Program-made: the position numbers and the translations under genes
The notes under the pieces: generated by a model
The model's input: only the letters and a program-made list of their open reading frames with translations
What the model was told of the DNA's origin: nothing
Databases searched by the model: none
Shown here: piece by piece, positions 25,051 to 55,054 of the stretch
How positions within the stretch are numbered: position 1 is the stretch's first letter
Layout of the letters: each line of letters opens with the position of its first letter
Virus record (IMG/VR): IMGVR_UViG_3300028384_001500
Span: 1 to 64,000 of that record
Length of the DNA stretch: 64,000 bases
Direction: 5' to 3' (one strand)

Positions 25051-25068
25051 AATCTTTCCCTTTTATTT

Positions 25069-25824: not shown

Positions 25825-26399
25825 TTTCTTCCTACCTTTGTATAATAATCAATTAAAAATGCCCTACTATTTAGAAAATCTTCCATAGTAAAAGGATCCG
25901 GATCGCTTGCGCCTGAAGCTTCTAAATTATCCAAGTCATCTTGTATGTCTTCACTACTTTTATTTTTTACAGCTTTGGCAATTGCAACAATAATACTCAT
26001 AGCCTTATTTACATCCATGCCATTTAACACACTTACAAATTTTTGTCCGGCAATATGTATTATTTTATGTTCGCCCTTTCCATAATTAACAGCAATAGCA
26101 ACGCCTTCTTGCAGTGCATCGATAGTTAAACTCACATCAGGATCGATCATGTTTTTAACTACTTGCCGTTTAAAAGGAACTATTCCGTCGCTTCTAACAA
26201 AATGATGATATCCTATTCTTTTCAAACGACTGATAACTTCCATAGGCCAATCTTTTGGTCCTCCACCCTCATCATCGTCATCCAGAGGTGGTAAATCAGG
26301 AGGACCGCCACTGGTTAAATCTAGGTCACCAAAGTCTCCAGTAATATCTCTAAATTCTTTAAGAATTAATTTTTTAAGTTGTCTTCTTGTAATTTTCAC
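25821..26399 (-). CDS. Leader-bearing protein with Gly/Pro/Asp linker
   Basis: MKITRRQLKKLILKEFRD. Confidence 0.7.
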   Translation of the reverse strand: MKITRRQLKKLILKEFRDITGDFGDLDLTSGGPPDLPPLDDDDEGGGPKDWPMEVISRLKRIGYHHFVRSDGIVPFKRQVVKNMIDPDVSLTIDALQEGVAIAVNYGKGEHKIIHIAGQKFVSVLNGMDVNKAMSIIVAIAKAVKNKSSEDIQDDLDNLEASGASDPDPFTMEDFLNSRAFLIDYYTKVGRK

Positions 26400-26414
26400 T
26401 TTTATTTCCTTAAT

Positions 26415-31000: not shown

Positions 31001-31003
31001 AAT

Positions 31004-33493: not shown

Positions 33494-33494
33494 T

Positions 33495-34061
33495 TTACCA
33501 CCATGTATATTTGCTTTTACCGCCAAATAAGTGTGGGTATCGACCAATTCTACAAGCCCAGTAACCAGCTTTTGTTTTGTCTTTTTTATCTTTGCATTTA
33601 TGACGAGCAGCAAAAGATTTTCTACGGGCAGGATCTTTAAGACCGACAGACATTCCTTTTGCACCAAAAGAAACTTTTTTTACTTTGCCTGTTTTAGGGT
33701 TCTTGACATAGACATAAAACTTTTTGCTTCCGCCGCGCTTTGGCTTATTTAGTTGAACTTTTTTACCCTGATACTCGGCTTCATCCAGGGTTTCTAGATT
33801 GTCAATAGATTCATCTAATTCAGCAGGGATAGGGTAATCAAGGGGAACGTACCCACCATTAAATTCTCCGTATTCTCCTATGTCTGATGTTAATAAATCA
33901 TGATCATACTCATCAGCTTCTATAATTCCTGCGCGGTATGCTTTTTTGGCTTCTACAATAAAAGCAAAAAATGATTTTGAACCCGGCCTGTAAATACTTT
34001 CTCTAATCGGTAAATTATTATTAATATGATAATTCATACCTTCAGACAATAAAAAAGACAT
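33495..34061 (-). CDS. Conserved large-phage protein with basic C-terminal domain
   Basis: LDEAEYQGKKVQLNKP..KKFYVYVKNP..KKVSFG..RRKSFAARHKC..AGYWAC, a segment I recognise from T4-like marine phages. Confidence 0.65.
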   Translation of the reverse strand: MSFLLSEGMNYHINNNLPIRESIYRPGSKSFFAFIVEAKKAYRAGIIEADEYDHDLLTSDIGEYGEFNGGYVPLDYPIPAELDESIDNLETLDEAEYQGKKVQLNKPKRGGSKKFYVYVKNPKTGKVKKVSFGAKGMSVGLKDPARRKSFAARHKCKDKKDKTKAGYWACRIGRYPHLFGGKSKYTWW

Positions 34062-34121: not shown

Positions 34122-34493
34122 TCAATGTTTACCATCAAAAGGATTGTCTCTTTTAAAATAATTTCTTCTTCTTCTAGCAGCATCCGGATCTTCTAAATCT
34201 AGTTCAGGTATTCCGTAATTACCAGACTTAAGTCCTTTTTCTTGTAATATTTTTCTTGCTTCTTCAGCCGGGTTTTCTGATGATCTAATTTTTTCCAAGT
34301 CTCTTCTGGTAAAAGCTTTTTTCATTCTTTCATCTAACATTTTGTGTGCATAAAGTATTGCTGCTGGAGTCCCAACAGCTAAAACAGCCATTGCAGCTTT
34401 AGCTAGTAAAGTTACCATACTAACCATATCACCTTCACTAATTACACCTTCGTTTAATAAAATTTTTTTAATTTGTCTTTTTGTAATTTTCAC
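34122..34493 (-). CDS. Leader-bearing protein with hydrophobic helix
   Basis: MKITKRQIKKILLNEG; AAMAVLAVGTPAAILYA. Confidence 0.7.
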   Translation of the reverse strand: MKITKRQIKKILLNEGVISEGDMVSMVTLLAKAAMAVLAVGTPAAILYAHKMLDERMKKAFTRRDLEKIRSSENPAEEARKILQEKGLKSGNYGIPELDLEDPDAARRRRNYFKRDNPFDGKH

Positions 34494-34858
34494 TTTAGCT
34501 TTCTCCTGCTAAATTTTTTAATTTCCTCAAGTGATTCAAGGATTACTATTTTTACATCATTAACTTCAGATACACTTTGCATTTTGTGGCGTGCAGCATC
34601 AGTCCAGTAACCTTTTACTTCAATATATGTATCATGCTCAGGCAAGTAAAAATCAGGAATGTAGTTTCTTTTTCGACCGGTTTTTGAGAAGTACTTAAGC
34701 TTCATGTCTTCTCTACGATCCCACAATATCTTAAGATGATCTAGCCTCTCTGCCATGGCAACTTCCCATGTACTGTCCATAAGTACTTTACTTCCGTCTT
34801 TTCTTTCGTATAGTGACTGTTTACTCCACAACTTTTTCTTTTTCTTTTTTCTAGGCAT
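34490..34858 (-). CDS. TnsA-N/head-completion-like PD-(D/E)XK endonuclease
   Basis: MDSTWE..KRNYIPDFYL..YIEVKGY; start MPRKK at 34858 via ATGA overlap. Confidence 0.7.
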   Translation of the reverse strand: MPRKKKKKKLWSKQSLYERKDGSKVLMDSTWEVAMAERLDHLKILWDRREDMKLKYFSKTGRKRNYIPDFYLPEHDTYIEVKGYWTDAARHKMQSVSEVNDVKIVILESLEEIKKFSRRKLK

Positions 34859-35292
34859 CAGGTTGAAAAATACCAATTATCCCCTTCGGGTGTAGTTAAG
34901 ACCATGTCATCAACATTGACGACTATATAACCTAAATCAAATAAGTCTTGCAACATTAACTCAACGTGTTCCGATGTAAATTCACCAAAGTCACTGCCGC
35001 CTAGGAGACTATAGTCATTAGAAGAAAGACGTTCTAAGAATCTTGTACCTTCATCTACAACATTGTCGATATGAATACCATAACTACTATCCCAGTTATA
35101 GTCGTCACTACGCATTTCAATAAAACTAAATAGATCTTTTTTGCCTTCTTCATAGTGAGGGTGATTTCTTTCCAGCTGATCTGGGTGTATGCCTAACGTA
35201 ACTCGCATTGCATCTCGATCTAAAGGTCGCTTAGGTGTAAACTTGGTTTCTGCGATTAAACGTCTTAATTGTCTTCTTGTAATTTTTATCAA
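34858..35292 (-). CDS. Leader-bearing protein
   Basis: MIKITRRQLRRLIAE. Confidence 0.7.
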   Translation of the reverse strand: MIKITRRQLRRLIAETKFTPKRPLDRDAMRVTLGIHPDQLERNHPHYEEGKKDLFSFIEMRSDDYNWDSSYGIHIDNVVDEGTRFLERLSSNDYSLLGGSDFGEFTSEHVELMLQDLFDLGYIVVNVDDMVLTTPEGDNWYFST

Positions 35293-35837
35293 AGATACTC
35301 CCCCACTTTTTCCATCGCCTTTTCATATTTATCAGCGAGGTATCCATCAGCTGGCTTAGGGCCATAGCTATATATATCATAACTATTGTAACCATGTTTG
35401 TCAGCTAAGTGATCGTGGATATGTTGATATATATCCATTCCTATTTCTCTAAAATCAAAAGCAGCGCTTCCTTGATCGAATATACTAATTCCTTGAGACT
35501 CTAATTCAACTATTTTTTGATAGCGCCTAATCAATTCATCTGTTAACTCATATGGGATCGGAATGGTTATTGTTTCGTTTGGTGACTGCCCATTTTTCAC
35601 AGCAACTGTATCTAAGGTGACACGGTTTGCAGCTTCGTATGTTCTTAAATCATCTACATAACTACGGTCTTCTGGGTAACCAAAAGAGTGGGCAAAAGAA
35701 TCAGCGTCTACCTCCAGATCTGACGAACTGGCAAAATCATCAATCTTGCCTAGTAGATCTTCACTAGGTACATTAGGAATACTAGGCTTGATTGTTGTTT
35801 CTATTAATCGTCTTAAGATGTTTCTTGTAATTTTCAT
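35289..35837 (-). CDS. Leader-bearing protein
   Basis: MKITRNILRRLIE. Confidence 0.7.
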   Translation of the reverse strand: MKITRNILRRLIETTIKPSIPNVPSEDLLGKIDDFASSSDLEVDADSFAHSFGYPEDRSYVDDLRTYEAANRVTLDTVAVKNGQSPNETITIPIPYELTDELIRRYQKIVELESQGISIFDQGSAAFDFREIGMDIYQHIHDHLADKHGYNSYDIYSYGPKPADGYLADKYEKAMEKVGEYL

Positions 35838-37156: not shown

Positions 37157-38428
37157 TTACTTATCAAATGAAGTGTAAGATGGGTCAAGTGAATCTACGC
37201 TGACGTCGCTAAGTACTTCACTTATTCTAATATTGCTAATGTTTGTTTCAAATTGATGTGCTGCCAAGCCCACATCTAAATTCATGTCTTTACCGCCAAT
37301 ATCAAGTGCAACTAATTCACCGTCAGCTCTTCTTCCAAATTGTTCCTCATGAATATCACGCCATGTTAATGGGTCAATATTTTTTTCAGGATCGCCTGAC
37401 TTAAGTATGATTTCATCAATTAAGTTTAAGATATCTAAGTAGTCCTCGTATAAAAGACTGTTTTTGTTCATTGGCAGTTTCTTTCTTTGTCTTATTCTTT
37501 GGTTTTTTAAATGATCAATAAAAATTTGATTAAACTGATGAACTTCAGGAAAATTATTAACTATACCTAATACATTTAAAAATAACATTTTTAGTGTAAG
37601 AGGACTTCCGTTGGTTGTTTTAACTAAAGCCTCACCTGTTTCTTTACCGTGTGTAGAAAATAAATTATTGACTTCACTAGCAATTCTTCTTACATGTTTA
37701 GGAGGTGTGTTAGGATTGCTAATGTAATTTATAAGTTGTTGAAACGTACTAAGATTATATTTTTTTAAAAATCTTAAACCACTGTAACCCGCTTTAAGTA
37801 TATCTTGATAAACAGCTTCAATCTGATTTGCAATTGTATTTCCTAAACTATATAACGCAATTATATCATTAAATTTAGTAAACCTTATTTGTATAAATTT
37901 TGCTAATTCAATGTCTATATTTTTAAAAACAAATCGATCAGGAATAATTCTTTCCATTATTATGTAGTAAAGTCTATTTATTTGATAGTTTTTATTGCTT
38001 TTGTTGTGAGTCGACCCACGCTTCCAATATACAACCGGTTGATCCAAGTTAATAACACCTTTTGAATAAACTTTTGCAGTTTTTTCATGACTATTGGAAA
38101 CAAAACCTAGGTTTTTAGCAGAGTTGTCAATTGAATGAAATAACTTAATAACTTTAAAATCGTCTAGTGAAACAACAATACCTTCTGCACCGCTAGCAAC
38201 AATCCTAGGCATGTGCATCCGATTCTCAAAGCGAGGAAGTCTTTCTATGTCAGCTAGGTAATCAACAATTTTTTCTGCTAAAGGCGCATTAAGTGACCAA
38301 CCTTTATCGTGTGAAGGATCACTAGCAGCACTAGCGTCGTATAAATAAAAATTCTCACTAAGCAAATTTAACCTTTTACTTATTGATTCGCGTATTAATC
38401 CCCTTATTATGTTTTTTAAATTAGCCAA
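37157..38428 (-). CDS. Leader-bearing protein-kinase-like protein
   Basis: ASGAEGIV Gly-loop, VIK, YIIMERI hinge, WRDIHEEQ catalytic-loop-like, ALDIG; long insertion between the lobes. Confidence 0.6.
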   Translation of the reverse strand: MANLKNIIRGLIRESISKRLNLLSENFYLYDASAASDPSHDKGWSLNAPLAEKIVDYLADIERLPRFENRMHMPRIVASGAEGIVVSLDDFKVIKLFHSIDNSAKNLGFVSNSHEKTAKVYSKGVINLDQPVVYWKRGSTHNKSNKNYQINRLYYIIMERIIPDRFVFKNIDIELAKFIQIRFTKFNDIIALYSLGNTIANQIEAVYQDILKAGYSGLRFLKKYNLSTFQQLINYISNPNTPPKHVRRIASEVNNLFSTHGKETGEALVKTTNGSPLTLKMLFLNVLGIVNNFPEVHQFNQIFIDHLKNQRIRQRKKLPMNKNSLLYEDYLDILNLIDEIILKSGDPEKNIDPLTWRDIHEEQFGRRADGELVALDIGGKDMNLDVGLAAHQFETNISNIRISEVLSDVSVDSLDPSYTSFDK

Positions 38429-38492: not shown

Positions 38493-38792
38493 ATGAATAA
38501 ACACCTTTATGTAATACAATCAGATGTAACAGGCGCAATAAAAATAGGTATGAGTAAAAACCCTCAAAGCAGATTACGACAGTTACAAACCGGTTCACCG
38601 TACAAACTTAAACTACTAACCATAGTAAAAGGCAAAGGGAGCTTAGAAAAGTCTCTGCATGAATCTCTAAAACCTTATAAACAGTCTTGCAAGGGAGAAT
38701 GGTTTGATTTTGAATGTACGGGCTCTTTTCCAATTTGGTTAAGCGAAATGGTCGACTGGGACATTGCAAATGTTTGGTGGGATAAAAGTTAA
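38493..38792 (+). CDS. GIY-YIG nuclease (T5orf172/MUG113-like)
   Basis: LYVIQ..IKIGMSKNPQSRLRQLQTGSP..EKSLH..GEWF. Confidence 0.85.
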   Translation: MNKHLYVIQSDVTGAIKIGMSKNPQSRLRQLQTGSPYKLKLLTIVKGKGSLEKSLHESLKPYKQSCKGEWFDFECTGSFPIWLSEMVDWDIANVWWDKS

Positions 38793-39460
38793 CTAGATAA
38801 TATTGCTTGAAGTTGTTGGATTGTTTGTTGACTGTTGCCAGTCACATGAAGTATTCCCAATCCACCTCTGGAATTCCACTGTAAAATTGTTTCTTCCTTG
38901 TCATCGATTAAAATGTTAGGAGTTCCTGTTTGTGATACGGCGTAGTTTTGTTTTTCATCTGCTGGGACAATGACTATTTCAGTTGGTTGCGGTGTAAGAT
39001 TTTCTTGTACCCACATTATTTTACCTTGCTCGGCTGGCATGCCTTTTGTACTTCTAATTGGTGCGCTAAGAATATTAACAGTTAGGCCTAAAGATGTAAT
39101 AAAAGGCCACAACATATCAGTACCGTCAGTTAGCTTCGGTAAGTTGTAAAAGAATTGACCCGGATCCTGAACAACAACAGAATATTTAAGGCGTTTTATT
39201 AGTTTAACAGCATCAATATCTGATCCTACAGGAACTCTAAAGTCTGGGCCGAAAGCTGTCATAACTTTACTTATTCCTTTTCTTAAAGATTTTGATGCGA
39301 TATGCCCGCCGCTAGAAGCAAAATTCAAGTACTCATTCATCTTCAACACAACACCGGTGTTAAAATCAGCAATGACCCCATCCATATCACAGTATATTTG
39401 ATGTTGAGCACCTAATGATTCTGTTATCAAAGCCTTAAGTTGATTTCGTGTTATTTTCAA
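38789..39460 (-). CDS. Leader-bearing HAD-family 5'(3')-nucleotidase-like protein
   Basis: MKITRNQLKALITESL, then IYCDMDGVIADF, ILSAP, K, ILIDD. Confidence 0.82.
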   Translation of the reverse strand: MKITRNQLKALITESLGAQHQIYCDMDGVIADFNTGVVLKMNEYLNFASSGGHIASKSLRKGISKVMTAFGPDFRVPVGSDIDAVKLIKRLKYSVVVQDPGQFFYNLPKLTDGTDMLWPFITSLGLTVNILSAPIRSTKGMPAEQGKIMWVQENLTPQPTEIVIVPADEKQNYAVSQTGTPNILIDDKEETILQWNSRGGLGILHVTGNSQQTIQQLQAILSS

Positions 39461-39472
39461 AACTACCTCGCT

Positions 39473-40168
39473 TTATGGCATATGGTAACTAATGTTGTAC
39501 TCATATAATATTTCTTGCATTTCTATTAACCAATCTGTTATATAAGTCATTGGATCACCTTTGCGTGTCATTGAATAATTCCCATAAGTATATTGTCCGT
39601 CTACTAGATCTCTAGCAGCAGAAAGAAGTTTTATTCTATGACGAGCTAATTTTGACAAACCCTCAATTATTTTTTCTTCTGCATCACGAAATGCCTGACC
39701 TTTTATTCCTTGTGACCTTAAACCTTCGTAAAAACTTGGATATATGTCTCCTGTTCGTAATCTACGAAGTACTCCCTGCTTATTCATATACTTGCTAACG
39801 TCCCTTATTCTACTATTAAGCATTTTAAAAACAGTGTCGCCAAAGGGAGGCAAAATGTGTCTACTATATACATTTGCGTACGCATTTCCGGAGTTATAAT
39901 GATAATTGTCTTGATAATATCTTAGAATCTCTTGATTAGTTTGGGCATTAATAAGTTCCCGATCGATTGGCTGCCCAAACTGCTGATGTAACTTAATTGC
40001 TGCTTTTACTAGTGCCATGTCACCATTGTTTCCTGGGTTTGGCTCGAGTTTGTGAGGAATACCTAGCTGCTTAAGTTTAAGCTTTCTTGGGCCTCGTTTT
40101 CTTTCGCCTGTTTCCTTAATGATACTTTTCTTTATCATTCTTTTAATTTTATTTTTTGAAATTTTCAT
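39473..40168 (-). CDS. Leader-bearing protein
   Basis: Start MKISKNKIKRMIKKSIIKE at 40168 after AAGGAG. Confidence 0.7.
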   Translation of the reverse strand: MKISKNKIKRMIKKSIIKETGERKRGPRKLKLKQLGIPHKLEPNPGNNGDMALVKAAIKLHQQFGQPIDRELINAQTNQEILRYYQDNYHYNSGNAYANVYSRHILPPFGDTVFKMLNSRIRDVSKYMNKQGVLRRLRTGDIYPSFYEGLRSQGIKGQAFRDAEEKIIEGLSKLARHRIKLLSAARDLVDGQYTYGNYSMTRKGDPMTYITDWLIEMQEILYEYNISYHMP

Positions 40169-40181
40169 CGTTAAATCTCCT

Positions 40182-41129
40182 TTATTTGACAATGTCTGCA
40201 CTAGCTAAATGACCGTTAACAACAATTAATTTACCTTTTATGTAGTTATCAAACCATTTTGCAACTTCTGATACTTTTTGCTTTAAATTCTTAAGATACT
40301 CAACTTCATAGTCAGTTAACCCAGCAATATTAAGTCTTAATCCATTTTTTGTTAAAAGTTCTTGACAAACCATTTCTGCTAGATCATCATTTAAAAAATA
40401 ATTTCTATATTGCTCTTGTTGATGAGGTACTGGACCTTTTCTTTGGGTTATTGCGCTTTTCATCGTAAGAATGTCGATTACTCGCTTACTAAAACCCGGG
40501 CTAGTATTTTGTAAATTTCCTATATCATGACCTAGCTTTGTAAGCTTATTTCTCATTAATTCACTATCAAAAATAGCATGCATTATCATCCAAGGCGTCA
40601 TTTGAAACTTGTGATTTCCAATATTAATAAAGTCTGTTTGATAATAAATAATGCAATCGTTGTCCTCTATTGTCGATAAATCAATATCAGGTTTGACTTT
40701 TTTAAGAAAGTTTTTTGCACTTTGATTTAAAGGCGATATTTTTAATCGACTGTCAAAGTTACCTCTTTGCCTACCAACAAACTTATTAAACTGACTTTTT
40801 GAGATTGTCCCGTTTTTAAAACAAAATGATCCAATCTGAGCAAGAACGCATACTTTTGCGTTCATGTACCCGAATCTTTTTTCTGCTTCTTTGTTAAATG
40901 AACTGCCTTTCGCGTAAACTGACGCTGCTTTTTTTTGTTTGTTCATTCTTTTAATTGCACCTGGATCAAATACCGGCCTTTCGTAGTCACCTAGAAATTC
41001 ATAATTGTCTGTTGCAGCTATCTTATTAAAAGAAGAAAATTGATCATCAGCAGAATCGACAGTCCCTAGATTTTTTTTAAACGCCATTTCTCTTATTATT
41101 TGTCGTAGCTGTCTTCTAGTTATTTTCAT
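40182..41129 (-). CDS. Leader-bearing protein
   Basis: MKITRRQLRQIIREM. Confidence 0.72.
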   Translation of the reverse strand: MKITRRQLRQIIREMAFKKNLGTVDSADDQFSSFNKIAATDNYEFLGDYERPVFDPGAIKRMNKQKKAASVYAKGSSFNKEAEKRFGYMNAKVCVLAQIGSFCFKNGTISKSQFNKFVGRQRGNFDSRLKISPLNQSAKNFLKKVKPDIDLSTIEDNDCIIYYQTDFINIGNHKFQMTPWMIMHAIFDSELMRNKLTKLGHDIGNLQNTSPGFSKRVIDILTMKSAITQRKGPVPHQQEQYRNYFLNDDLAEMVCQELLTKNGLRLNIAGLTDYEVEYLKNLKQKVSEVAKWFDNYIKGKLIVVNGHLASADIVK

Positions 41130-41692
41130 TTGTCTTCTTTACCTCCACTTTCGCTAGCATATTTAACGCCCATGATAGTACCAATAATACTGAATGAGTT
41201 CGTTAGAAGTATACCAAGTAAATTTGACCAGGTATTACCAATTAATGTCGTATCAGCACCTGCACCTTTAGTGTATAAAGCGACAATATACAGTATTGAC
41301 GTCATTATACCTACACCTACGATTATCCAAAGGGCAACATTGACAATATTTCCGATTAGTTCAAATTGTGTTTTCTTTTGCATAAGGTCTAAATCGTTTA
41401 ATGCAGCATCTTTTGCGCCTTCAGCCTGTGCAAGTGCTTCTTTCAATTCAACCATTAATGCATCGTTTTCTTTTGCTTTGGCTGCTAATTGCTTATTTTG
41501 ATCCTGAACTTGTCTAGTGATCTCTAATCGCTTCTTTCTGGTTTCATTGTCCTTTTCTTTCGCCTCAACAAGATATTTTTTAAAGTCTTCGTCTTCTGTT
41601 TTAATGACTTTAATAATGTTACCTTCAAGGTACACACGTCTTTCTTTAGCCAGATCTAAAAGCTGTTTTATGTCTTCTTTACAAAAATTCAT
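41126..41692 (-). CDS. Coiled-coil protein with two C-terminal TM helices
   Basis: Heptad region, then IVNVALWIIVGVGIMTSILYIVAL and LLGILLTNSFSIIGTIMG. Confidence 0.72.
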   Translation of the reverse strand: MNFCKEDIKQLLDLAKERRVYLEGNIIKVIKTEDEDFKKYLVEAKEKDNETRKKRLEITRQVQDQNKQLAAKAKENDALMVELKEALAQAEGAKDAALNDLDLMQKKTQFELIGNIVNVALWIIVGVGIMTSILYIVALYTKGAGADTTLIGNTWSNLLGILLTNSFSIIGTIMGVKYASESGGKEDK

Positions 41693-41704
41693 TTTTTATT
41701 CTTT

Positions 41705-42472
41705 TTATCTTGCACAAAAATAAAATGTTGCAAATCCTTCGTAGTAATCATAAATAAACAGTCTACCATCAACGTTGATAGAGACAAATTTATTATCTAG
41801 CTCTTTCGGGTAATGATCAGATGTAGGAAAAGAAACATTTTTATTACTAAAAAAGTAGTCATGAAGTGCTGTAAAGAGTGGATTAAAATCATCATCCCAC
41901 ACTTCTGTTAGTGAGTCTATCACACCCATATCTTCTATTTCACACCCTAAAAATTCTGAGTATACACGAAATTCGTCACCCATACCATCATAATCATTAT
42001 TTTCTAGTGTCATTTCTGGCATCTCGCCTACAATAGAAAATACATCACCATATGTGTTTCTTAAAAAGTTACAATACGTCTTATTTTTTGACAGCTTAAC
42101 AAACTGTTCTGGATCGATATCATTAAATTCTGGTACCAAACTATCTTGGGCTTTTGATCTTATGCCTAGTGAGTCAACAGCAGTCTCCTCAGCAGGTGTC
42201 AAAGGGTTATCGTAATCAAGGTCTGGGTGCCTAACGGCTAACTCACGCCCCATCTTTCTATACGAAGCATTATTAGGTCCGTATGTGTCTACTCCACTTG
42301 AGCCTTTCATTAAAGATGATAATTTTGGGTCCAATCCTGCAATTTGATCGTCTTTTTTGCGACCTAATTCATATGCGACATCAGAAGGAGTAGCTACTCC
42401 TTCTGGGTCAACTATGTAAGTGCGTGCTGCTTCTATTATTAGTTGCCTTAATTGTCTTCTTGTTATTTTCAT
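41705..42472 (-). CDS. Leader-bearing protein inserted in the signalling cluster
   Basis: MKITRRQLRQLIIEA. Confidence 0.72.
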   Translation of the reverse strand: MKITRRQLRQLIIEAARTYIVDPEGVATPSDVAYELGRKKDDQIAGLDPKLSSLMKGSSGVDTYGPNNASYRKMGRELAVRHPDLDYDNPLTPAEETAVDSLGIRSKAQDSLVPEFNDIDPEQFVKLSKNKTYCNFLRNTYGDVFSIVGEMPEMTLENNDYDGMGDEFRVYSEFLGCEIEDMGVIDSLTEVWDDDFNPLFTALHDYFFSNKNVSFPTSDHYPKELDNKFVSINVDGRLFIYDYYEGFATFYFCAR

Positions 42473-42900
42473 TTATACACCTTAAACGGGTTTGTTCTAT
42501 TAACGTATCCGTCATAGTCTTTTTTAAACTCTTCTAAGCGAGGTTCAATATCATCAGACTTAACTATCCAAAATTGAGCCCCGGCTGAGATAGCTTTTCC
42601 CATTTCTTCTTTGTCAGCTGAGGAAGATATGATACCAATGACCACGCCGTTACCATATTCAAAGTTAATTTTACGAATTAACTCAATTCCGTTAAATGAC
42701 GATCCAATAATGTTAAGATCAACAAACACACAGTCTGGTTTTTGATCTTTTTTACCTTGCCATGCATCAAAAAGTTTAGCGGCCTCATCAGCAGAGTCTA
42801 TAGACTCTAAGTTGAGTGTTATATCTAATAAACTACATGCATCTTCAAAAACGAGATGAAATAAGTTTTCATCATCTACCAATAATATTGAATTAATCAT
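42469..42900 (-). CDS. Single-domain response regulator (CheY-like receiver)
   Basis: ILLVDDE, phospho-acceptor VFVDLN, IISSS, FWIVKS; no output domain. Confidence 0.88.
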   Translation of the reverse strand: MINSILLVDDENLFHLVFEDACSLLDITLNLESIDSADEAAKLFDAWQGKKDQKPDCVFVDLNIIGSSFNGIELIRKINFEYGNGVVIGIISSSADKEEMGKAISAGAQFWIVKSDDIEPRLEEFKKDYDGYVNRTNPFKVYK

Positions 42901-43787
42901 TCGAACTCCACCTTAATCATTGTACCTGTCTCTAATTGTTCAGAAGATACTTTAAACCCATGTTCATTAAGTATGGCGACACAAATGTTTAATCCTAATC
43001 CTGACCCACTTTCTGACTGATTTTTTCTTCTTGTGTAGGGTTGACGTAACCTATCAAAATCTTTTTGGCTCATACCGCGACCATTATCAATCACAGCAAG
43101 CGTTTTACTATTTATCATTTCTATCTTTACCCATTTTGTATCACTATCATTGTACTTTAATCCATTTCTTATCAAGTTGTCAATCGCAGTACAAAACAAA
43201 GACTCGTTAACACGCATAGTCGGTAAGTCTTCTGAGACCAAAACCTGGTCTGCATAATTTGTTCTTTTTAAATATTTTTCTAATGCTTCGCCAATATCAA
43301 TCATGTCTAAGCAAAGTGTGCTGTCTTCTCTAACAAGATTGGTAAATTCATACACACCTCTATAAACATGTTGAGAGTGTGCTAAACCTTCCTTTAAAAG
43401 CCGAAGCGGTGATTCAAGCTTAAGGTCTTTGATAATTTCAGGCTTAAGCCTTCGTTCTAATGATCTTACACCTCTAGGAATGTAAGTATTTAAACCGCTG
43501 TGCATATCATGTCTAAGTATTTTAGCTGCATGCTCAAGATATGTATTTTTTTCCAAGACAGAATCTAACAACTCACGTTCTGTGCTTTTTACCATAGTTA
43601 AGAATTCAAGAACAAATGTGCTAAAAGGTAAAGCAAAGACAATTACACATGCATAACCAAAAAGTGCTGTGTAATAAGTTGACTTAATTAATTTAAAAAC
43701 AATTAAACTTTGAACAACAAAAAATGACAACATAATTGTTAAAGCTAGAGAAAGACAAATCTTTGATCGCTTGCTTATTTTATCCAT
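42897..43787 (-). CDS. Membrane-anchored sensor histidine kinase
   Basis: Two TM helices; H-box KILRHDMHSG; DNLIRNGLKY, IDNGRG, GSGLGL; start MDKISK at 43787. Confidence 0.88.
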   Translation of the reverse strand: MDKISKRSKICLSLALTIMLSFFVVQSLIVFKLIKSTYYTALFGYACVIVFALPFSTFVLEFLTMVKSTERELLDSVLEKNTYLEHAAKILRHDMHSGLNTYIPRGVRSLERRLKPEIIKDLKLESPLRLLKEGLAHSQHVYRGVYEFTNLVREDSTLCLDMIDIGEALEKYLKRTNYADQVLVSEDLPTMRVNESLFCTAIDNLIRNGLKYNDSDTKWVKIEMINSKTLAVIDNGRGMSQKDFDRLRQPYTRRKNQSESGSGLGLNICVAILNEHGFKVSSEQLETGTMIKVEFE

Positions 43788-44007
43788 CGGTATGTAAAGC
43801 AATATGGATTTTTCTATCGATTTCTTTAATTTTTTCATTATTTTCTTCCGTAGGGTTTAAGGCATATTTTAATTTTAATTCTTCTCTCTTTTTGTAGAGC
43901 CCGGTTATGTATTTGTCAGCGAACAAATTCTTCTTATTGCAAATAAATACAAACATTGCTGAGCTCAAAGCTAGCGAAATTAAAAATACAGCTGTCATAT
44001 CAATCAT
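43780..44007 (-). CDS. Small membrane protein
   Basis: N-terminal hydrophobic helix; overlaps both kinase genes. Confidence 0.6.
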   Translation of the reverse strand: MIDMTAVFLISLALSSAMFVFICNKKNLFADKYITGLYKKREELKLKYALNPTEENNEKIKEIDRKIHIALHTDG

Positions 44008-45002
44008 AGCAATTTTACTCCTATAACTGTTCCTGTGTCTACTTTCTCGACGTTAACAGTAAACCCATGTTCTTTTAAAATAGCGTTTGCAATATTAAGA
44101 CCTAACCCAGATATGTCATCGTTTTTAACTTCTCGCATATAAGGCATGCAATATAGATCATACTCATACTGTGTCATTCCAACGCCGTTATCTTCTATTA
44201 CTAGCTCATTATTATATCTCATATAAATTTTTACTTTTTTATCTTTGCTGTCGTTGTAAGTTATTCCGTTTCTTATAAAATTGTCCAATGCAATACAAAA
44301 CAGCGTAGGGTTGATTTCTGAGACGACTAGATCACTTAATTCTACTTTATTAGAGTACGATGTACCTTCTAAAAAACCCATCAATATCTTTTTTAAATTA
44401 TGCTTTTCTACTTTAAACTCAGGTTTTCTTTTAACAAGATTAGTAAATTCATACACGCCTCTATAAACGTTCTGTGTGTGTTTTAAACCCTCCTTTAATA
44501 GTTTTATACTTAAACCTAAACGATGTTCCTTGATTGCTTCCTCAGGCAGCTTATCTAATAAAAGCTTAAGGCCTCTTGGAATATAAGTGTTAATGCCGCT
44601 ATGCATATCATGTCTAATAATTTTTGCTGTATGCTCAAGATATATGCTTTTTTGTTGTAGCAAATGTTTGTCTTTTATTTGATCTGTTAACTCTGTTCTT
44701 AAGTTAAAATATTCTTTAAGCCAATCGTCATAAGTTTTATTGTCACCTGGCATAAACATTCCTGTCTGATAATGGGTCGGTACTTTAACGCCGTCCTCAA
44801 GAGTAATAAAAATAGATGTAAGTTTAATATCAACAATTCTAATTTTGCTAAACTTATTTTCTAATTCAGACTCGATACATAGTGTGTCTTCACTAGCACA
44901 GACAAAAACTGGGCATGTTTTAAGTTGTGCATATGATTCTTGATCGTAATAGTTTCTAGGTTCCCATTTGAGTGAAAACCACTCTCCTTTTTGTGCGCGC
45001 AT
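44004..45002 (-). CDS. Soluble sensor histidine kinase
   Basis: H-box KIIRHDMHSG; DNFIRNGITY, EDNGVG, SGLGL; no TM segment. Confidence 0.88.
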   Translation of the reverse strand: MRAQKGEWFSLKWEPRNYYDQESYAQLKTCPVFVCASEDTLCIESELENKFSKIRIVDIKLTSIFITLEDGVKVPTHYQTGMFMPGDNKTYDDWLKEYFNLRTELTDQIKDKHLLQQKSIYLEHTAKIIRHDMHSGINTYIPRGLKLLLDKLPEEAIKEHRLGLSIKLLKEGLKHTQNVYRGVYEFTNLVKRKPEFKVEKHNLKKILMGFLEGTSYSNKVELSDLVVSEINPTLFCIALDNFIRNGITYNDSKDKKVKIYMRYNNELVIEDNGVGMTQYEYDLYCMPYMREVKNDDISGLGLNIANAILKEHGFTVNVEKVDTGTVIGVKLL

Positions 45003-45021: not shown

Positions 45022-45396
45022 CTAATTATAATAAACCTGCACAAAAAGAATTGATATTGCTAAAAATACGCATATCATTGTTTTAGGAGTGAACATTGAT
45101 TCACCTAAGAAATGCCAAGTCATTATCGGAAAAACTGTGTAGGAAAAAACTGCAGCAATAAAACGAACTGACCATAACTCTTCTCCTGTTGCGATAAAAC
45201 AAAATTTAGTACCATACCAGAACGCCAACCCCGCAGGTGTTCCAAAAAGAAGAGTTGCCAAAATGGGTTTATCTTTCCAGTAGTCCCAAACAAATTGTGA
45301 ATTACCGGCAAACCAACCCATAATATGACCTAAGACCAGAAACCCAATCCCAATTAACATTTCTCTACTAAAAAATTCAATTATTTTTTCAATCAT
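45022..45396 (-). CDS. Small four-TM membrane protein (DMT/SMR-like)
   Basis: Four hydrophobic segments; HFLGESMF..K..ICV pattern. Confidence 0.55.
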   Translation of the reverse strand: MIEKIIEFFSREMLIGIGFLVLGHIMGWFAGNSQFVWDYWKDKPILATLLFGTPAGLAFWYGTKFCFIATGEELWSVRFIAAVFSYTVFPIMTWHFLGESMFTPKTMICVFLAISILFVQVYYN

Positions 45397-45446
45397 TACA
45401 ATACCTATTTTTGTATTATAATTATAACACGTATTTGGAGAATTAT

Positions 45447-47782: not shown

Positions 47783-48286
47783 TTACCAAAACTTATCACC
47801 CATTAAGTCGTAATAAGGGTGCATAATATGTCCCGGTATTTTTCTATGTGAATACCCAAACGCATGCCCTAGTTCGTGTTCTAAGAGTAAAATAAAATTG
47901 TGCGTCCCAGGCTTAAAAACAATTGTTGCAGACTGAATAATTCCTAGTTTTGACGATCTTTTAGTTGATGCCAGCACTCCTTGTTCAAGTTTTTCTGTCT
48001 CTTGTGTCTTTAAAACAATAAACCCGGATAATAAGTCAACGTCTTTACAAATCGAATTTAGTCTATTGTACTCATAAAAATATACTTTTTCACCTTTACT
48101 GTCCCAATATTCAATTGCCCTCTTAATAGTTTCTTCTTTTATTTCGTTTCCTGAACAGTTTAAAACAATAGGTGGGTATTTCCAATGACAAGGTTGACGT
48201 GCAGTTAAATTATAAGTTTCTTTAATAGTAATACCTAGAAAGAAACCAAAAATTAACGCAGTGAACAGTCTCTTTGCCGAATTCAT
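47783..48286 (-). CDS. Matrixin-like zinc metalloprotease, membrane-anchored
   Basis: HELGHAFGYSH (HExxHxxGxxH), Met-turn HIMHP, N-terminal hydrophobic helix. Confidence 0.85.
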   Translation of the reverse strand: MNSAKRLFTALIFGFFLGITIKETYNLTARQPCHWKYPPIVLNCSGNEIKEETIKRAIEYWDSKGEKVYFYEYNRLNSICKDVDLLSGFIVLKTQETEKLEQGVLASTKRSSKLGIIQSATIVFKPGTHNFILLLEHELGHAFGYSHRKIPGHIMHPYYDLMGDKFW

Positions 48287-49860
48287 TCACCGCAACCTAG
48301 AATAGCATAATCAATCTCAACTGTATTACCACCTTCAGGTATTGAATTAGAATTAAAGACAATTGAATTTGTTGCTTCGTCGTATATCCAGTCATGTGAA
48401 AGCTGCCCATTTACTCTAACTTCAATCGTATCTTCCATAACATTGCTTTCGCTCATTTCAAAAGAAGCTCTAACAGAAACTTCTGTTGCTAAGTTTTGCA
48501 TTTGAACCCCCCAATCAGGTGCGCATATCGAATAAGTTTGACCGTTATATCTTTGCGTCATTTCATAATAGCCTCCACCAAACGGAACGTTATACGATGT
48601 ATTATTTGATGGGTTAACCAATAAACATCCTGTGGGGTAATCTCCAATAACAGCAAATTGCCTTACTAGACTAGGCGATGATTTAATATTGTCAAAAAAA
48701 GCAAAATAACTTGCATAACTATTTGGACTATAGTCAGGCTCGTCAGATATATAAACGATTACGAAATTAGAATTAGGCCTCCAGTAATCGTTAGAAAGTG
48801 ATGCTAGACTAGAAAAAGCCTGTGCATAGTATATTCCTTGCTCAAAAGGAGAACCTCCTGTACCGATAGAGTTGATTACACTAGCTGCCCACATAACAGG
48901 ATCAGGGTGTCGATTGTCAATCCAGTCATGACCGTCGTATTGACGTAGCATAGAACTATCTGTGGTGATAAACCCTAAGTGGTAGTCGACATTCATACCT
49001 TGCAGTATCGCTACGAAATCATTCATTTGATAGGCTAGTTCTTGTTGCTGATCATTCATGGATCCAGAATTGTCAACGACAAATACAATATCAACTATTT
49101 TTGATTCGTCTTGAACGTATCTATCGTGAAACCAATGAACAATATCTCCGTAACCTTCCTGAACAATAATAACTTCACTGTTGACTGGGTCGTTGCTCTT
49201 AACTGTTATTTGACTTTCATCCATGTTAACGTCAGTTGGACTATACAGTATACTAAAGTCCAACTCTTGACCAGGTATGAGTTCCCAAGGAAGAACAGGA
49301 AGAGTCCCAAAATCAGCAACGATATCTGTAGGTAGTGTGGCCATCTGAGTGACGTCAGTAATTGTGAGATTTAAATTACCGTTATTTCTTAAAGTAATAG
49401 TTTCTTCAATATCACATCCAATACTGATATCACCAAAATACAAGCTAGGAGGCTCAACTGACAAGAGTGGTGCATCTCCATTTCCAGCAATAGGTAATTC
49501 TAGATATTCTTCATCTTCATCATTAGATAAAATAGTAATCGATGTATTGTTAGATTCGTATGTTTCTGGATTATAATAGACGTTAAACTCAACTGAATCG
49601 CCGGGTTGAATAATATATTCTTCACTTAAATTATCGTTCATAGAAAATCGTGAGCTATTATTAACAACAGGTTTGTTGATAATTAAGTCTTCATCACCTG
49701 CGTTTATAACAGCAAAACTTTCTTGACCACTCTCATGTCCTGATAATAGACTTCCAAAATCGATTGATTCAGGATGCAATACAATTTCTGGTCCGGTTTT
49801 TATTTCGTTTTTTAAGGCATAGTCATTGCATGCCATTACTAGTGTCAATATTAAATACAT
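48283..49860 (-). CDS. Lipoprotein with two Ig-like (ASH/choice-of-anchor D) domains and a vWA domain
   Basis: Lipobox VMAC; IDFG..INAGDEDL and LYFG..NNGNLNL repeats; MIDAS DIVFVVDNSGSM. Confidence 0.8.
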   Translation of the reverse strand: MYLILTLVMACNDYALKNEIKTGPEIVLHPESIDFGSLLSGHESGQESFAVINAGDEDLIINKPVVNNSSRFSMNDNLSEEYIIQPGDSVEFNVYYNPETYESNNTSITILSNDEDEEYLELPIAGNGDAPLLSVEPPSLYFGDISIGCDIEETITLRNNGNLNLTITDVTQMATLPTDIVADFGTLPVLPWELIPGQELDFSILYSPTDVNMDESQITVKSNDPVNSEVIIVQEGYGDIVHWFHDRYVQDESKIVDIVFVVDNSGSMNDQQQELAYQMNDFVAILQGMNVDYHLGFITTDSSMLRQYDGHDWIDNRHPDPVMWAASVINSIGTGGSPFEQGIYYAQAFSSLASLSNDYWRPNSNFVIVYISDEPDYSPNSYASYFAFFDNIKSSPSLVRQFAVIGDYPTGCLLVNPSNNTSYNVPFGGGYYEMTQRYNGQTYSICAPDWGVQMQNLATEVSVRASFEMSESNVMEDTIEVRVNGQLSHDWIYDEATNSIVFNSNSIPEGGNTVEIDYAILGCGE

Positions 49861-53443: not shown

Positions 53444-55054
53444 TTACTCAGAATCGCTTTTAACTTCAATAAGAGAACAATCAGCAGATAAAAGCATAGT
53501 TGCAGCAGACACAGCATTTTCTAATGCACAACGGGATACTTTGGCGGGATCGATTACACCTAACTCAAACATGTCTCCAAAAACCTTGTTGCGAACGTCA
53601 TACCCAACGTTAGAGACACCTTTTGACTCTTTCTGTATGTTTGTTAAGATATTGTGATGGGATAATCCAGCGTTGCTTAGAATTTGTCTAAATGGCTCTT
53701 TGCATGCACTTATAAGCAAGTCTTTTCCAGCTGCAATATTTTTATCAATATCGCCGTGATCTAATTTACTTCCAAAAGATGATGCTGCCTGATACAAAGC
53801 CATCCCACCACCGGGTAGAACACCTTCTTCTAGGGCAGCGCGAGTTGCATGCAAAGCATCATCAACACGATCATAACGCTCAATAAGTTCAGATTCAGTT
53901 GCAGCACCAACTCTAAGGATCGCTATGCCTCCCGATAATTGCTGGAGCCTATACTTTAAAAGCAATTTTTCTTCATTGCTAAGACCCGGATACTTGAGAC
54001 TGTCTTTAATTGCTAGCATTCTTTCTTTTGAATTATCTAGTTTTGCATTTTCATCTTTGATGACAAGTGTTTTTGACTTTTGAATAATTATCTTTTTGCA
54101 AGTACCGAACATTTCCATTTCAAACGAAGTCATGTCAAATCCACCGTCGACAACACGCCCACCTACTATTGATTGTAGATCTAATAATAGATCATGTCTA
54201 GCACCGCCAAATCCAGGCGATTTAATAGCTGCGATTTGCAAAGATCCTTTAACTCTATTTAAAACCATTCCTTGCATTGCATCACCTTCAATTTCATTTG
54301 CAATAACAACAATTGGGCGACCGGTATCTAAGGCTAATTCTAAAGGCTTCATTAACTCTCTAATTGAATTAAACGTTCTATCTGCCATTAACAGTAACGG
54401 ATTTTTAAATTCTGCAACCATTTTATTTTTATCTGTAACAAAATACGGTGATAAAAACCCTCGTTCCATTTGAAATCCGTCGACAACAGTTAAAGAGCTA
54501 TTAAATCCTTTTGCTTCTTCAACTAGAACATGGCCATCAGGCCCAGCAGCTTCAATTGCCTTTACAATTAATTTAGCAATTTCTGTTTCGCCATTTGCTG
54601 ATATTGTTGCAACTTTTAAAAGATCATCAGTACCAGCGACCTCAACTGCACAGCTTTTGATATTGTCTGTTATTTCTTTTTTTATAAGATCAATTCCTAG
54701 CTTAAGCTGGTCAATATCAAATCCCGCAGTTTTATATCTTAAGCCTTCATTATAAATAAACTGAGCTAAAACTGTCGCTGTGGTCGTACCATCACCTGCT
54801 TCTTCAGCTGTTCTACTTGCAGACTCTTTAAGAATTTGCACACCTAGGTTTTCAACTTCATCAACTAGATTAATTGATTGTGCAACTGTTACACCGTCTT
54901 TTGTTACGAGCGGATGTTGCCCGGGTCTATGTATAAGAACTAATTTACCTTTCGGGCCCATAGTTACCTTAACTGTATTAGCTAGTTTATCGATACCTCT
55001 TTTAATTTTTATATCTAAATCTTGACCAGAATAAATCTCTCTTTTAATTTCCAT
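53444..55054 (-). CDS. groL: Chaperonin GroEL
   Basis: TMGPKG, TKDGVTVA, GDGTTTATV, ISANG, KSPGFG, RVDDALHATRAALEEGVLPGGG, GVIDPAKV; no GGM tail. Confidence 0.95.
   Translation of the reverse strand: MEIKREIYSGQDLDIKIKRGIDKLANTVKVTMGPKGKLVLIHRPGQHPLVTKDGVTVAQSINLVDEVENLGVQILKESASRTAEEAGDGTTTATVLAQFIYNEGLRYKTAGFDIDQLKLGIDLIKKEITDNIKSCAVEVAGTDDLLKVATISANGETEIAKLIVKAIEAAGPDGHVLVEEAKGFNSSLTVVDGFQMERGFLSPYFVTDKNKMVAEFKNPLLLMADRTFNSIRELMKPLELALDTGRPIVVIANEIEGDAMQGMVLNRVKGSLQIAAIKSPGFGGARHDLLLDLQSIVGGRVVDGGFDMTSFEMEMFGTCKKIIIQKSKTLVIKDENAKLDNSKERMLAIKDSLKYPGLSNEEKLLLKYRLQQLSGGIAILRVGAATESELIERYDRVDDALHATRAALEEGVLPGGGMALYQAASSFGSKLDHGDIDKNIAAGKDLLISACKEPFRQILSNAGLSHHNILTNIQKESKGVSNVGYDVRNKVFGDMFELGVIDPAKVSRCALENAVSAATMLLSADCSLIEVKSDSE

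Follow-up and report, generated by a model that had tools for sequence, protein, structure and literature searches.

A phage-encoded two-component module predicted to act on a membrane protein found in phage lysis cassettes

A jumbo phage encodes its own sensor kinases and a small phospho-receiver that appears to dock onto a previously undescribed membrane protein, termed ccTM here, which is found in the lysis cassettes of related phages. The data suggest that these viruses use sensed signals to decide when to burst the host, and our preferred reading, held with moderate confidence, is signal-gated control of lysis at the protein level. No expression or biochemical data exist for this system and no sequencing run was listed, and in the genome studied the endolysin candidate lies 57 kb from the module, so that the lysis link is borrowed from relatives.

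The module lies on the minus strand at 41126-45002 of the window, which is the whole 64,000-nucleotide stretch analysed (positions 1 to 64,000 of IMG/VR record IMGVR_UViG_3300028384_001500). The record is that of a 236-kb T4-like jumbo myophage and is 77% complete. An initial annotation, made from sequence alone, had described two paralogous kinases with a near-identical H-box and different input regions, an output-less receiver with all catalytic residues and two membrane proteins, and this observation is confirmed by our analysis. Its interpretation, that two signals are integrated onto a membrane effector, for example for lysis timing or superinfection sensing, is supported only in part.

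Composition of the module

The region and its immediate surroundings contain the following features.

45397..45446 (-): short divergent intergenic region with tandem TATAAT-like boxes about 20 nt before the ATG of the 124-aa membrane protein gene; likely promoter of the co-directional gene string.
45022..45396 (-): 124-aa small membrane protein of unknown function, with at least 2 and probably 4 hydrophobic segments.
44004..45002 (-): HK1, soluble histidine kinase of 332 aa; input domain, residues 1-120 (44643-45002); H-box, residues 121-144 (44571-44642), with putative phospho-acceptor H131; then the HATPase_c domain.
43780..44007 (-): 75-aa ORF with one N-terminal TM segment, lineage-specific and of uncertain status as a gene.
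42897..43838 (-): HK2, membrane histidine kinase of 313 aa; TM hairpin, residues 29-77 (43608-43754), with an 11-aa loop between TM segments 29-47 and 59-77; H-box, residues 100-123 (43470-43541), with putative phospho-acceptor H110; then the HATPase_c domain.
42469..42900 (-): stand-alone receiver of 143 aa; phospho-acceptor D61 is encoded at 42718-42720.
41705..42472 (-): 255-aa gene inserted between the receiver and ccTM, carrying the genome-wide MKITRRQLRxLIxE leader.
41126..41692 (-): ccTM, 188 aa; conserved N-domain, residues 1-70 (41483-41692); variable coiled coil, residues 71-112 (41357-41482); juxtamembrane helix plus TM hairpin, residues 113-178 (41159-41356); the proposed output.

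Both kinases exceed the Pfam cut-off for HATPase_c (40.7 bits for HK1 and 56.7 bits for HK2, against 26.4). They are 50% identical over 217 aa (E 2e-69), and only in the DHp+CA core. The H-boxes read YLEHTAKIIRHDMHSGINTYIPRG and YLEHAAKILRHDMHSGLNTYIPRG, and this block is nearly invariant in 76 non-redundant relatives, in which the RHDMHSG block and the N, G1 and G2 boxes (N138/N142, DNGxG and GxGLG) are invariant. Pfam HisKA itself does not reach threshold on either protein, and the HisKA-type assignment therefore rests on the position of the H-box and on the match of the core profile, whose best solved relative is the HK853 type (2c2a/3dge, E 2e-11). HK1 has no hydrophobic segment. Its input domain occurs in only 17 protein clusters, and a structural model of it is confident for residues 1-70 only and matches no known fold. 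In the kinase tree, HK1 forms a deep separate clade with the distal kinases of L002 and L003 (support 100/100; L and P numbers denote loci and proteins of this survey), whereas HK2 belongs to the main clade shared with single-kinase loci. HK2 probably starts at M18 (43787), because relatives align from residue 15-21 onward.

The receiver exceeds the cut-off for Response_reg (44.3 bits against 30.2) and is the most conserved protein of the module. It is 69-92% identical across 35 non-redundant relatives, and D9, D10, E11, D61, S92-94 and K114 are invariant in 36 relatives. The family-specific helix alpha1 (LFHLVFEDACSLLDI) and the C-terminal QFWIxKSDxIEPRL block are also conserved. ccTM has two TM segments and one long predicted helix from residue 35 to 141, and TM2 is nearly invariant (WSNxxGILLTNSFSIIGTIMGVKYA). 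It has no Pfam family, no PDB fold match and no convincing PHROG, the only match there being to a family of unknown function at E 0.005; membership of a described holin family is thus not found.

Several elements of the initial annotation required correction. The 75-aa TM ORF, which had been proposed as a partner, is not conserved: tblastn finds it only in the window's own record. The 255-aa gene is absent from the receiver-ccTM junction in nearly all relatives, L003 has a different leader-bearing gene at the same junction, and the gene is not part of the signalling module. A relative of the 124-aa protein, which has no Pfam or PHROG family, lies beside the module in only 5-6 of 80 loci, making it at most an optional accessory. 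Late expression had been inferred from an ATAATTA box, and this is not supported, since the heptamer at 45029-45023 is the last sense codons plus the TAG stop of the upstream gene and occurs 132 times in the genome. TATAATA is the most enriched intergenic 7-mer of the genome (25 seen, 2.3 expected). Promoter function of the TATAAT-like region is inferred, and no gap of 30 nt or more between called genes separates 45396 from 38492.

Conservation and viral distribution

The conserved unit is kinase(s), receiver and ccTM, in that order. A survey of synteny, which had been put forward at the outset as a means of confirming viral context, showed that 55 loci read HK>RR>ccTM and 12 read HK>HK>RR>ccTM, and that the remaining loci are cut by contig ends. 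ccTM follows the receiver in all loci not so cut, and flanking genes are otherwise unrelated across loci. One 177-kb record, 74% complete, has a full ccTM but no detectable receiver. There are 486 relatives of HK2 in IMG/VR, on contigs of up to about 300 kb, and about 5,100 ccTM clusters at 90% identity in metagenomes, with only 264 representatives at 50% identity. The claim that complete phosphorelays are rare in phages is thus not supported, at least for this clade.

It had been stated in advance that the proposal would fail if homologous clusters were mainly chromosomal and recently acquired. The clusters are instead overwhelmingly viral: against the 486 IMG/VR hits, only 6 loci were found in 185,579 species genomes, and at least one of those is a mis-binned phage contig, one carrying other genes of this phage at 50-66% identity. 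ESM Atlas clusters of ccTM are 100% viruses, and only 1 of 401 sampled genomes of the one phylum with a cellular copy has the N-domain. The record itself holds a large terminase, portal, major head protein, sheath and T4-type prohead protease, and G+C content is uniform across the window. Rare cellular versions do exist in Bacteroidota MAGs, with L088 lying among genes with type IX secretion sorting domains and L089 in a 967-kb contig, but they lack the TM hairpin. The possibility that the cluster is a recently captured host two-component system, or cellular contamination of the viral bin, with no phage-specific role, is therefore close to refuted and very unlikely.

Predicted docking, domain exchange and lysis-gene context

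Co-folding of the receiver with the 41126-41692 protein had also been named beforehand as a test of their coupling. A co-fold of two ccTM(1-112) with two receivers places helix alpha1 on the N-domain and scores 0.79 against a best control of 0.45; that mark was reached by 58 of 80 solved complexes and 2 of 110 mismatched pairs. The interface, at ccTM residues 18-29 and 48-66, falls on the family-invariant residues of both proteins. This score is a model's confidence, the 0.45 was reached by an unrelated control, and binding was not measured. The absence of an output domain in the receiver is shown, whereas adjacency and the co-fold support, but do not settle, ccTM as its partner. Within these limits, the coupling of receiver to ccTM is supported by invariant adjacency, the co-fold and domain swaps, and the inference from the missing output domain that control is exerted at the protein level is supported as well.

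The predicted contact uses alpha1 plus the beta5-alpha5 loop, the face that receivers normally give to kinases, phosphotransferases and some phosphatases, and not the usual alpha4-beta5-alpha5 output face. This raises the possibility that ccTM is not the output but a membrane-anchored auxiliary of the receiver, such as a phosphatase, sink or scaffold that docks like a DHp domain, with the phosphorylated receiver acting on another target, possibly a host protein. Invariant polar residues of ccTM (D48, R52, T59, Q63 and N66) lie in the interface, and the receiver is more conserved than any partner, as might be expected if it also meets a conserved host target. However, no histidine is invariant in ccTM, and there is no detectable homology to the kinase core (hhalign probability 0.3%). 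The domain swaps described below also argue against this reading, because the hairpin persists with sensors in loci that have no receiver at all, and so has a function of its own downstream of a sensor, and because the N-domain also drives kinase cores, which marks it as an input domain. We consider this alternative unlikely.

Domain swaps separate input from output. The N-domain plus coiled coil is fused to HisKA+HATPase_c cores in P0367, P0370, P0375 and P0389, and where context was examined (P0370 in L093-L095, and the like gene in L088) it is encoded directly after the receiver. Conversely, the coiled coil plus hairpin is fused to GAF, PAS or PAS-PAS, with no kinase or receiver in the flanks. 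The PAS domain of those fusions is 60-72% identical to stretches of loci that carry PAS-type kinases of this clade.

The initial suggestion of a link to lysis timing is backed by lysis-cassette context in relatives. All 8 PAS-hairpin loci read holin-like > PAS-hairpin > endolysin, or PAS-hairpin > endolysin > holin-like, and L092 and L096 add genes resembling an i-spanin and a lipoprotein o-spanin. In two-component loci an endolysin lies within three genes in 42 of 79 (12 of 35 after de-replication at 90% receiver identity) and in 38 of 64. Six lysin types are involved (PG_binding_1+GH19, Amidase_2, Phage_lysozyme, Peptidase_M15_3, a PHROG endolysin family and glucosaminidase), in many orders and orientations. 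In 37 of 79 loci no lysin was found among the nearest neighbours, and in the window's own genome the only endolysin candidate found (PG_binding_1+Amidase_2, 101747-102691) is not in a cassette. The TM hairpin and the cassette position in relatives fit a holin or antiholin and the position in this genome does not, which leaves that assignment undecided; permeabilisation of the membrane, or its inhibition, was not assayed.

Many cassettes already hold a separate small holin-like gene, and ccTM may be a regulator rather than the hole-former, or may do something else at the membrane. The pathway could end on ccTM with the hairpin serving a purpose other than lysis, such as a viroporin-like channel that tunes membrane potential or ion balance during infection, or a superinfection-exclusion switch, its place near lysis genes then reflecting only the clustering of membrane-acting genes. 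Consistent with this, TM2 is polar and nearly invariant (T164, N165, S168, T172 and the GxxxG-like GTIMG), as expected of a channel-lining or oligomerising helix, and the separate holin-like genes and the lack of a nearby lysin in the window's genome and in 37 of 79 loci also speak for it. Against it stand the 8 of 8 one-component loci, the full cassettes of L092 and L096, and an adjacency to six unrelated lysin families in many arrangements that is hard to explain without a shared function. We regard this reading as possible but unlikely.

Proposed pathway and comparison with known systems

We propose a phage-encoded two-component pathway whose output is a membrane protein, not DNA. In this view, one ancestral membrane kinase (HK2) and a lineage-specific soluble paralogue (HK1) autophosphorylate on the H-box histidine and transfer phosphate to D61 of a single receiver, which docks through helix alpha1 onto the conserved cytoplasmic N-domain of ccTM, probably a coiled-coil dimer. 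The signal would then pass down the coiled coil to the TM hairpin, which would act like a holin or antiholin and advance or delay host lysis according to what the kinases sense. Related phages reach the same hairpin without a phosphorelay, by fusing PAS or GAF sensors directly to it. Gene content, motifs, conservation, viral distribution, domain swaps and lysis-gene neighbourhoods are established by the analysis, and docking is a prediction. Autophosphorylation and phosphotransfer to the receiver, which rest on intact motifs and were not assayed although phosphotransfer too had been named as a point on which the proposal could fail, are inferred, as are the phospho-dependence of docking, the direction of the effect on lysis and the signals sensed; whether two signals are really integrated was not examined.

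A broader reading is compatible with the data, but we hold it only tentatively, as somewhat less likely than not. A large, cosmopolitan clade of aquatic T4-like and jumbo phages would carry a dedicated, modular lysis-decision device, whose constant part is a membrane hairpin in the lysis cassette and whose exchangeable sensors gate it either by direct fusion (PAS, GAF) or through a private phosphorelay with a stand-alone receiver that binds a new receiver-recognition domain. The same domain would be reused in rare Bacteroidota cells to chain one kinase to another. Lytic phages would then sense host or environmental state, such as membrane, redox or small ligands, and time the burst accordingly.

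The pathway as proposed resembles chemotaxis-type pathways with a stand-alone receiver (CheA-CheY-FliM) and other single-domain response regulators, in that a kinase would phosphorylate an output-less receiver that would act by binding another protein, and all receiver catalytic residues are present. It differs in that the kinase is HisKA-like and not CheA-like, the proposed target is a coiled-coil/TM-hairpin protein of an undescribed family, the predicted docking face is alpha1, and the genes are viral. In the lysis inhibition of phage T4, where antiholins RI/RIII act on holin T, a T4-like phage adjusts the time of lysis in response to a signal, as is proposed here, through regulatory domains attached to or bound to a membrane lysis protein. 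No homology was found, and here the signal would travel through a phosphorelay or a fused PAS/GAF sensor on the cytoplasmic side; a search of the incomplete record for Phage_holin_T found nothing, but the control genomes gave no hit either, so the presence of a holin T homologue is left undecided. In LytSR control of the holin-like CidAB/LrgAB proteins in Firmicutes, a two-component system is functionally tied to holin/antiholin-like membrane proteins, as is proposed here, but LytR is a DNA-binding regulator and the control is transcriptional and cellular, whereas the present receiver has no second domain, and hence no LytTR DNA-binding domain, and the proposed link is protein to protein.

Class II holins and pinholins (two TM segments, N-in/C-in) share with ccTM two TM segments with a short loop, a short charged C-terminus and small-residue packing motifs, in a lysis-cassette position in relatives; ccTM adds a cytoplasmic N-terminal domain of 110-150 aa and a coiled coil, and matches no holin family in Pfam or PHROGs. 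Finally, the sensor-fused membrane effectors of defence systems (cytosolic ligand sensor plus TM helices) have an architecture comparable to the one proposed here, in which a soluble and exchangeable input domain gates a small TM module. Here, however, the inputs are a putative receiver-binding domain, PAS or GAF rather than nucleotide sensors, and the context is phage lysis genes, not host defence islands.

Genome context and composition of the module

The window is the first 64 kb of the IMG/VR virus record that carries the module, which is 236,652 bp long and is rated 77% complete by CheckV. It encodes a large terminase, a portal, a major head protein, two adjacent tail-sheath paralogues of 988 and 1,049 aa (126232-132370 of the record, outside the window), a DnaE-type polymerase, a T4-type prohead protease (Peptidase_S77, 152966-153385), GroEL, and a phage-type helicase. 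Of 249 called genes, 232 lie on the - strand, and only 3.7% of the record is non-coding. A DNA similarity search against GenBank phages returned no match, and the nearest cultured relatives by large terminase are distant, namely Microcystis phage Mel-JY01 at 43% and Flavobacterium phages at 39%. The record is therefore a T4-like jumbo myophage from an uncultured aquatic clade. Other genes in the window include those for the GroEL (53444-55054, -; phrog_5725, E 2e-135), an ATP-dependent DNA ligase (6345-7601, -), and a 525-aa protein with ASH/DUF1573 Ig-like domains plus a VWA domain (48283-49860, -). Several very large ORFs of 763-1,079 aa (14873-18112, 26415-33667, and 59855-62527) have no Pfam or PHROG match. 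Seven genes lie on the - strand between 45396 and 41126, and their starts and stops overlap or nearly touch throughout. In order, these are:

a 124-aa multi-TM protein
HK1, a soluble histidine kinase of 332 aa
a 75-aa single-TM ORF
HK2, a histidine kinase of 313 aa with 2 TM segments
a 143-aa receiver
a 255-aa protein, 41705-42472
ccTM, 188 aa, a coiled coil followed by 2 TM segments

Both kinases carry HATPase_c above the Pfam cut-off, and the receiver carries Response_reg. HK1 and HK2 are 50% identical over 217 residues, and only in the catalytic core. Their H-boxes differ at 3 of 24 positions, and this block is nearly invariant in 76 non-redundant relatives, as are the N, G1, and G2 boxes. 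Among solved structures, the core profile best matches HK853-type kinases. The receiver keeps D9, D10, E11, D61, S92-94, and K114 in all 36 aligned sequences. The initial annotation had described a phage-encoded two-component module at this position, and that observation is confirmed.

To ask which of these genes belong together, IMG/VR was scanned with HK2, which gave 486 relatives. In the 80 best loci, the only genes shared beyond close kin are the kinase, the receiver, and ccTM. The order is kinase > receiver > ccTM in 55 loci and kinase > kinase > receiver > ccTM in 12 loci, and the rest are truncated by contig ends. The 75-aa ORF and the 255-aa gene are absent elsewhere. A search of GenBank phages with the receiver by tblastn gave no hit, and the same search with HK2 gave only weak generic kinase hits. 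The kinases range from 294 to 743 aa, with variable N-termini that include TM hairpins and one to several PAS domains, whereas the receiver is the most conserved protein, at 69-92% identity. In the kinase tree, HK2 falls in the main clade, and HK1 forms a deep separate clade with the distal kinases of the two closest loci (support 100/100). A second, independent duplicate clade exists in another sub-lineage. The addition of a second kinase that feeds the same receiver has therefore happened at least twice.

Some neighboring genes are kept in parts of the clade. YceI-like genes of about 174 aa without a signal peptide sit next to the kinase in many relatives (loci L015, 4889-5413; L019, 5477-5998; L027, 4290-4814; L094, 601-1134; and others) and in the cellular-type loci. 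These may be a ligand-binding accessory of the sensor, and none is present in the window. A 167-aa protein with a hydrophobic N-terminus and a matrixin-type zinc-peptidase motif (47783-48286, -; Peptidase_M10, 28.4 bits against a cut-off of 24) is kept a few genes upstream of the module in the window's sub-lineage (loci L002, L003, L015, and L017), although whether it acts on the cell wall is not known. A 99-aa ORF on the opposite strand inside the - strand gene string (38493-38792, +) is conserved in L015 and L017 at 83-88% identity. By eye it looks like a small T5orf172/GIY-YIG-type nuclease gene, for which no family search was run.

The 255-aa gene is one of a large family. About 45 of the roughly 249 ORFs in the record, of 64-834 aa and otherwise unrelated, begin with the leader MK(I/L)(T/S)RxQLRxLIxE, and in total 48 N-termini score above the best internal-position control. 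In the window these lie at 8110-8697, 24580-31000, 34122-35837, 37157-38428, 38789-41129, 41705-42472, and 57576-58430, with about 30 more ORFs elsewhere in the record. Two of the very large ORFs (26415-28709 and 28709-31000) carry the leader and share the same first 28 residues apart from three substitutions. The leader ends in (I/L)-x-E, which resembles T4 gp21 cleavage sites and capsid-targeting sequences. Together with the T4-type prohead protease, this suggests an unusually large set of capsid-targeted, protease-processed proteins, and the leader may mark a very large set of packaged or ejected proteins. In L003, a close relative of the window, a different leader-bearing gene (7366-7926) is inserted at the same junction between the receiver and ccTM. 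The junction seems to tolerate or attract such insertions.

Distribution and domain architecture of ccTM

The initial annotation had stated that its reading would fail if homologous clusters proved to be mainly chromosomal, and we found that they are not. A pattern scan of one genome from each of 185,579 species found six loci, all in MAGs of five different phyla. One of the six carries other genes of this phage at 50-66% identity and so is a mis-binned phage contig. Two are genuinely cellular Bacteroidota contexts: locus L089 lies in a 967-kb contig among sulfur and cytochrome genes, and locus L088 lies among proteins with type IX secretion sorting domains. Both lack the TM hairpin. Only 1 of 401 sampled genomes of that phylum has the ccTM N-domain, and that one is the query genome itself. 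ESM Atlas clusters of ccTM are 100% viral.

ccTM has only 264 representatives at 50% identity and about 5,100 clusters at 90% identity. Searches of ccTM against PDB sequences, Pfam, and PHROGs, and of its model against PDB and BFVD, found only its own family, with no Pfam family and no fold match in the PDB. The alignment shows four parts: an invariant N-domain (LEGNIxK ... F..Y ... D..R.KRLEITKQ.Q.QN); a coiled coil of variable length; a juxtamembrane DLDxxQKKxQxELI helix followed by TM1; and a short loop and an almost invariant, polar TM2. The model has a short helix at residues 5-18 and a continuous helix from 35 to 141, which hairpins into TM2.

Natural domain swaps were found among the profile hits. 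Four proteins carry the N-domain and coiled coil fused to a HisKA+HATPase_c core in place of the hairpin. Where context was examined, that gene directly follows the receiver, in YceI > kinase > receiver > [N-domain-kinase] > AraC-type loci and in the Bacteroidota locus L088. The rare cellular version (L088, 4100-7481; L093, 179-2523; L094; L095) reads PAS-kinase > 143-aa receiver, 72% identical to the phage one, > N-domain-coiled coil-HisKA-HATPase_c. This is a kinase-to-kinase cascade bridged by the stand-alone receiver, and it also hints at Bacteroidota as the host range of the phage clade. Flavobacteria-type hosts are a lead only. Conversely, the coiled coil plus hairpin is found behind GAF, PAS-PAS, or single PAS domains, in loci with no kinase or receiver in the flanks. 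Fusions of ccTM with a FecCD permease, a glycosyltransferase fragment, and a TsaD-like fragment (proteins P0295, P0278, and P0297) are probably chimeric assemblies and were not used as evidence. The N-domain therefore behaves as an input domain that travels with the receiver, and the hairpin behaves as an output that accepts other inputs. The PAS domain of the fused forms is 60-72% identical to stretches of loci that carry PAS-type kinases of the clade; thus, the same kind of sensor appears to reach the hairpin by either route.

Predicted receiver docking and association with lysis genes

Co-folding of the receiver with ccTM had been put forward in advance as a check on their coupling. A co-fold of two ccTM(1-112) with two receivers scored ipSAE 0.79 in three runs, against 0.01, 0.45, and 0.00 for the controls. 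The calibration mark was reached by 58 of 80 solved complexes and 2 of 110 mismatched pairs, counts that hold only roughly here because our own alignments were used and the job held two copies of each chain. The contacts are ccTM residues 18-29 and 48-66, and receiver residues 12-30 (helix alpha1) plus 116, which are the family-specific invariant residues of both proteins. The result supports binding but does not show it. The use of alpha1, the face normally offered to kinases, leaves room for a scaffold or phosphatase role of ccTM. However, ccTM has no invariant histidine, and the possibility that it is a degenerate DHp domain was rejected, since an hhalign comparison with the kinase core gave a probability of 0.3%. 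Two records, of 74.5 and 177.5 kb and 14% and 74% complete, hold a full ccTM with an intact N-domain (L121, 3150-3806, and L152) but no kinase or receiver upstream, and no receiver is detectable anywhere in either record.

The recurrent neighbors of the module are endolysins of unrelated families (PG_binding_1+GH19, Amidase_2, Phage_lysozyme, Peptidase_M15_3, and a PHROG endolysin family), small holin-like proteins with 2-4 TM segments, and a protein with an N-terminal hydrophobic leader and a coiled coil, placed between paired kinases. A lysin lies within three genes of the module in 42 of 79 loci of the first sample, in 12 of 35 after de-replication at 90% receiver identity, and in 38 of 64 loci of a second sample. 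For a genome of about 250 genes, chance would be expected to give a few per cent, although this estimate is our own inference and no matched control was run. Full Pfam/PHROG annotation of all contigs that carry ccTM, a phylogenetic count of independent junctions, and an analysis of co-variation between receiver alpha1 and ccTM residues 18-29 and 48-66 were not made. In 37 of 79 loci the nearest neighbors include no recognizable lysin, and a Pfam tally of these neighbors shows no further lysin family, finding one YkuD-type and one matrixin-type protein. The arrangements differ widely, and include lysin-kinase-receiver-ccTM-lysin, holin-lysin-kinase-receiver-ccTM, and kinase-receiver-ccTM-holin-lysin.

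All eight PAS-hairpin loci read holin-like > PAS-hairpin > endolysin, or PAS-hairpin > endolysin > holin-like. The GAF and PAS-PAS loci also hold a gene with an N-terminal TM segment and coiled coil, resembling an i-spanin, together with a lipoprotein gene resembling an o-spanin, a small TM protein, and the lysin. This places the hairpin family in the lysis cassette in these relatives, although these data do not indicate whether ccTM forms holes, blocks a holin, or does something else. In the window's own genome, the only endolysin candidate found (101747-102691) lies among unrelated genes, 57 kb from the module. Lysis genes are scattered in T4 as well, so this does not refute the link.

Inputs, expression, and relation to known systems

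HK2 has a TM hairpin with an 11-residue loop, which is the layout of intramembrane-sensing kinases. The 120-residue input domain of HK1 is confined to 17 protein clusters. A language-model search suggested a PAS domain (0.84-0.85), but the AlphaFold model is confident only for residues 1-70 and has no fold match with E below 0.1 in PDB or AFDB clusters; the signals sensed by either kinase were not identified, and the HK1 input is left as an unknown small alpha/beta domain.

The initial annotation took an ATAATTA box at 45023 as a sign of late expression. This heptamer (45029-45023) is the end of the upstream ORF, Tyr-Tyr-Asn-stop, and occurs 132 times in the genome. The T4-type late promoter motif TATAAATA has 17 copies in the genome, of which only 4 lie within 60 nt upstream of a start, all on the + strand, and it is not enriched before genes. 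These motifs assign no temporal class to the module, and a search for public sequencing runs holding the region, made to look for RNA evidence, listed none. The enriched intergenic motif is instead TATAATA, seen 25 times against 2.3 expected. Such boxes lie in the 50-nt divergent region at 45397-45446, ahead of the whole gene string, and a perfect TATAAT also sits at 45030-45025.

The interpretation offered in the initial annotation is thus supported in large part, though not throughout, and can now be stated more precisely: this is a widespread viral kinase-receiver-hairpin module, the proposed output of which is a new family of sensor-gated membrane protein associated with lysis cassettes. 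No paper describing it was found in the literature library searched. It also defines two new building blocks, a predicted receiver-binding input domain and a proposed sensor-gated TM hairpin, both of which come with natural domain swaps that make the wiring directly testable. Lysis timing sets burst size and phage fitness, and a phage-owned phosphorelay ending on a lysis-cassette membrane protein would be a new regulatory layer, present in thousands of environmental phage genomes. Apart from T4 lysis inhibition, and the communication systems of temperate phages that govern lysogeny, little is known about lytic phages sensing signals in order to time lysis. Two-component signaling and regulated holin systems are both already known; the module described here is a variation on each, in which the kinase and receiver are encoded by the phage and the proposed output is the ccTM hairpin.
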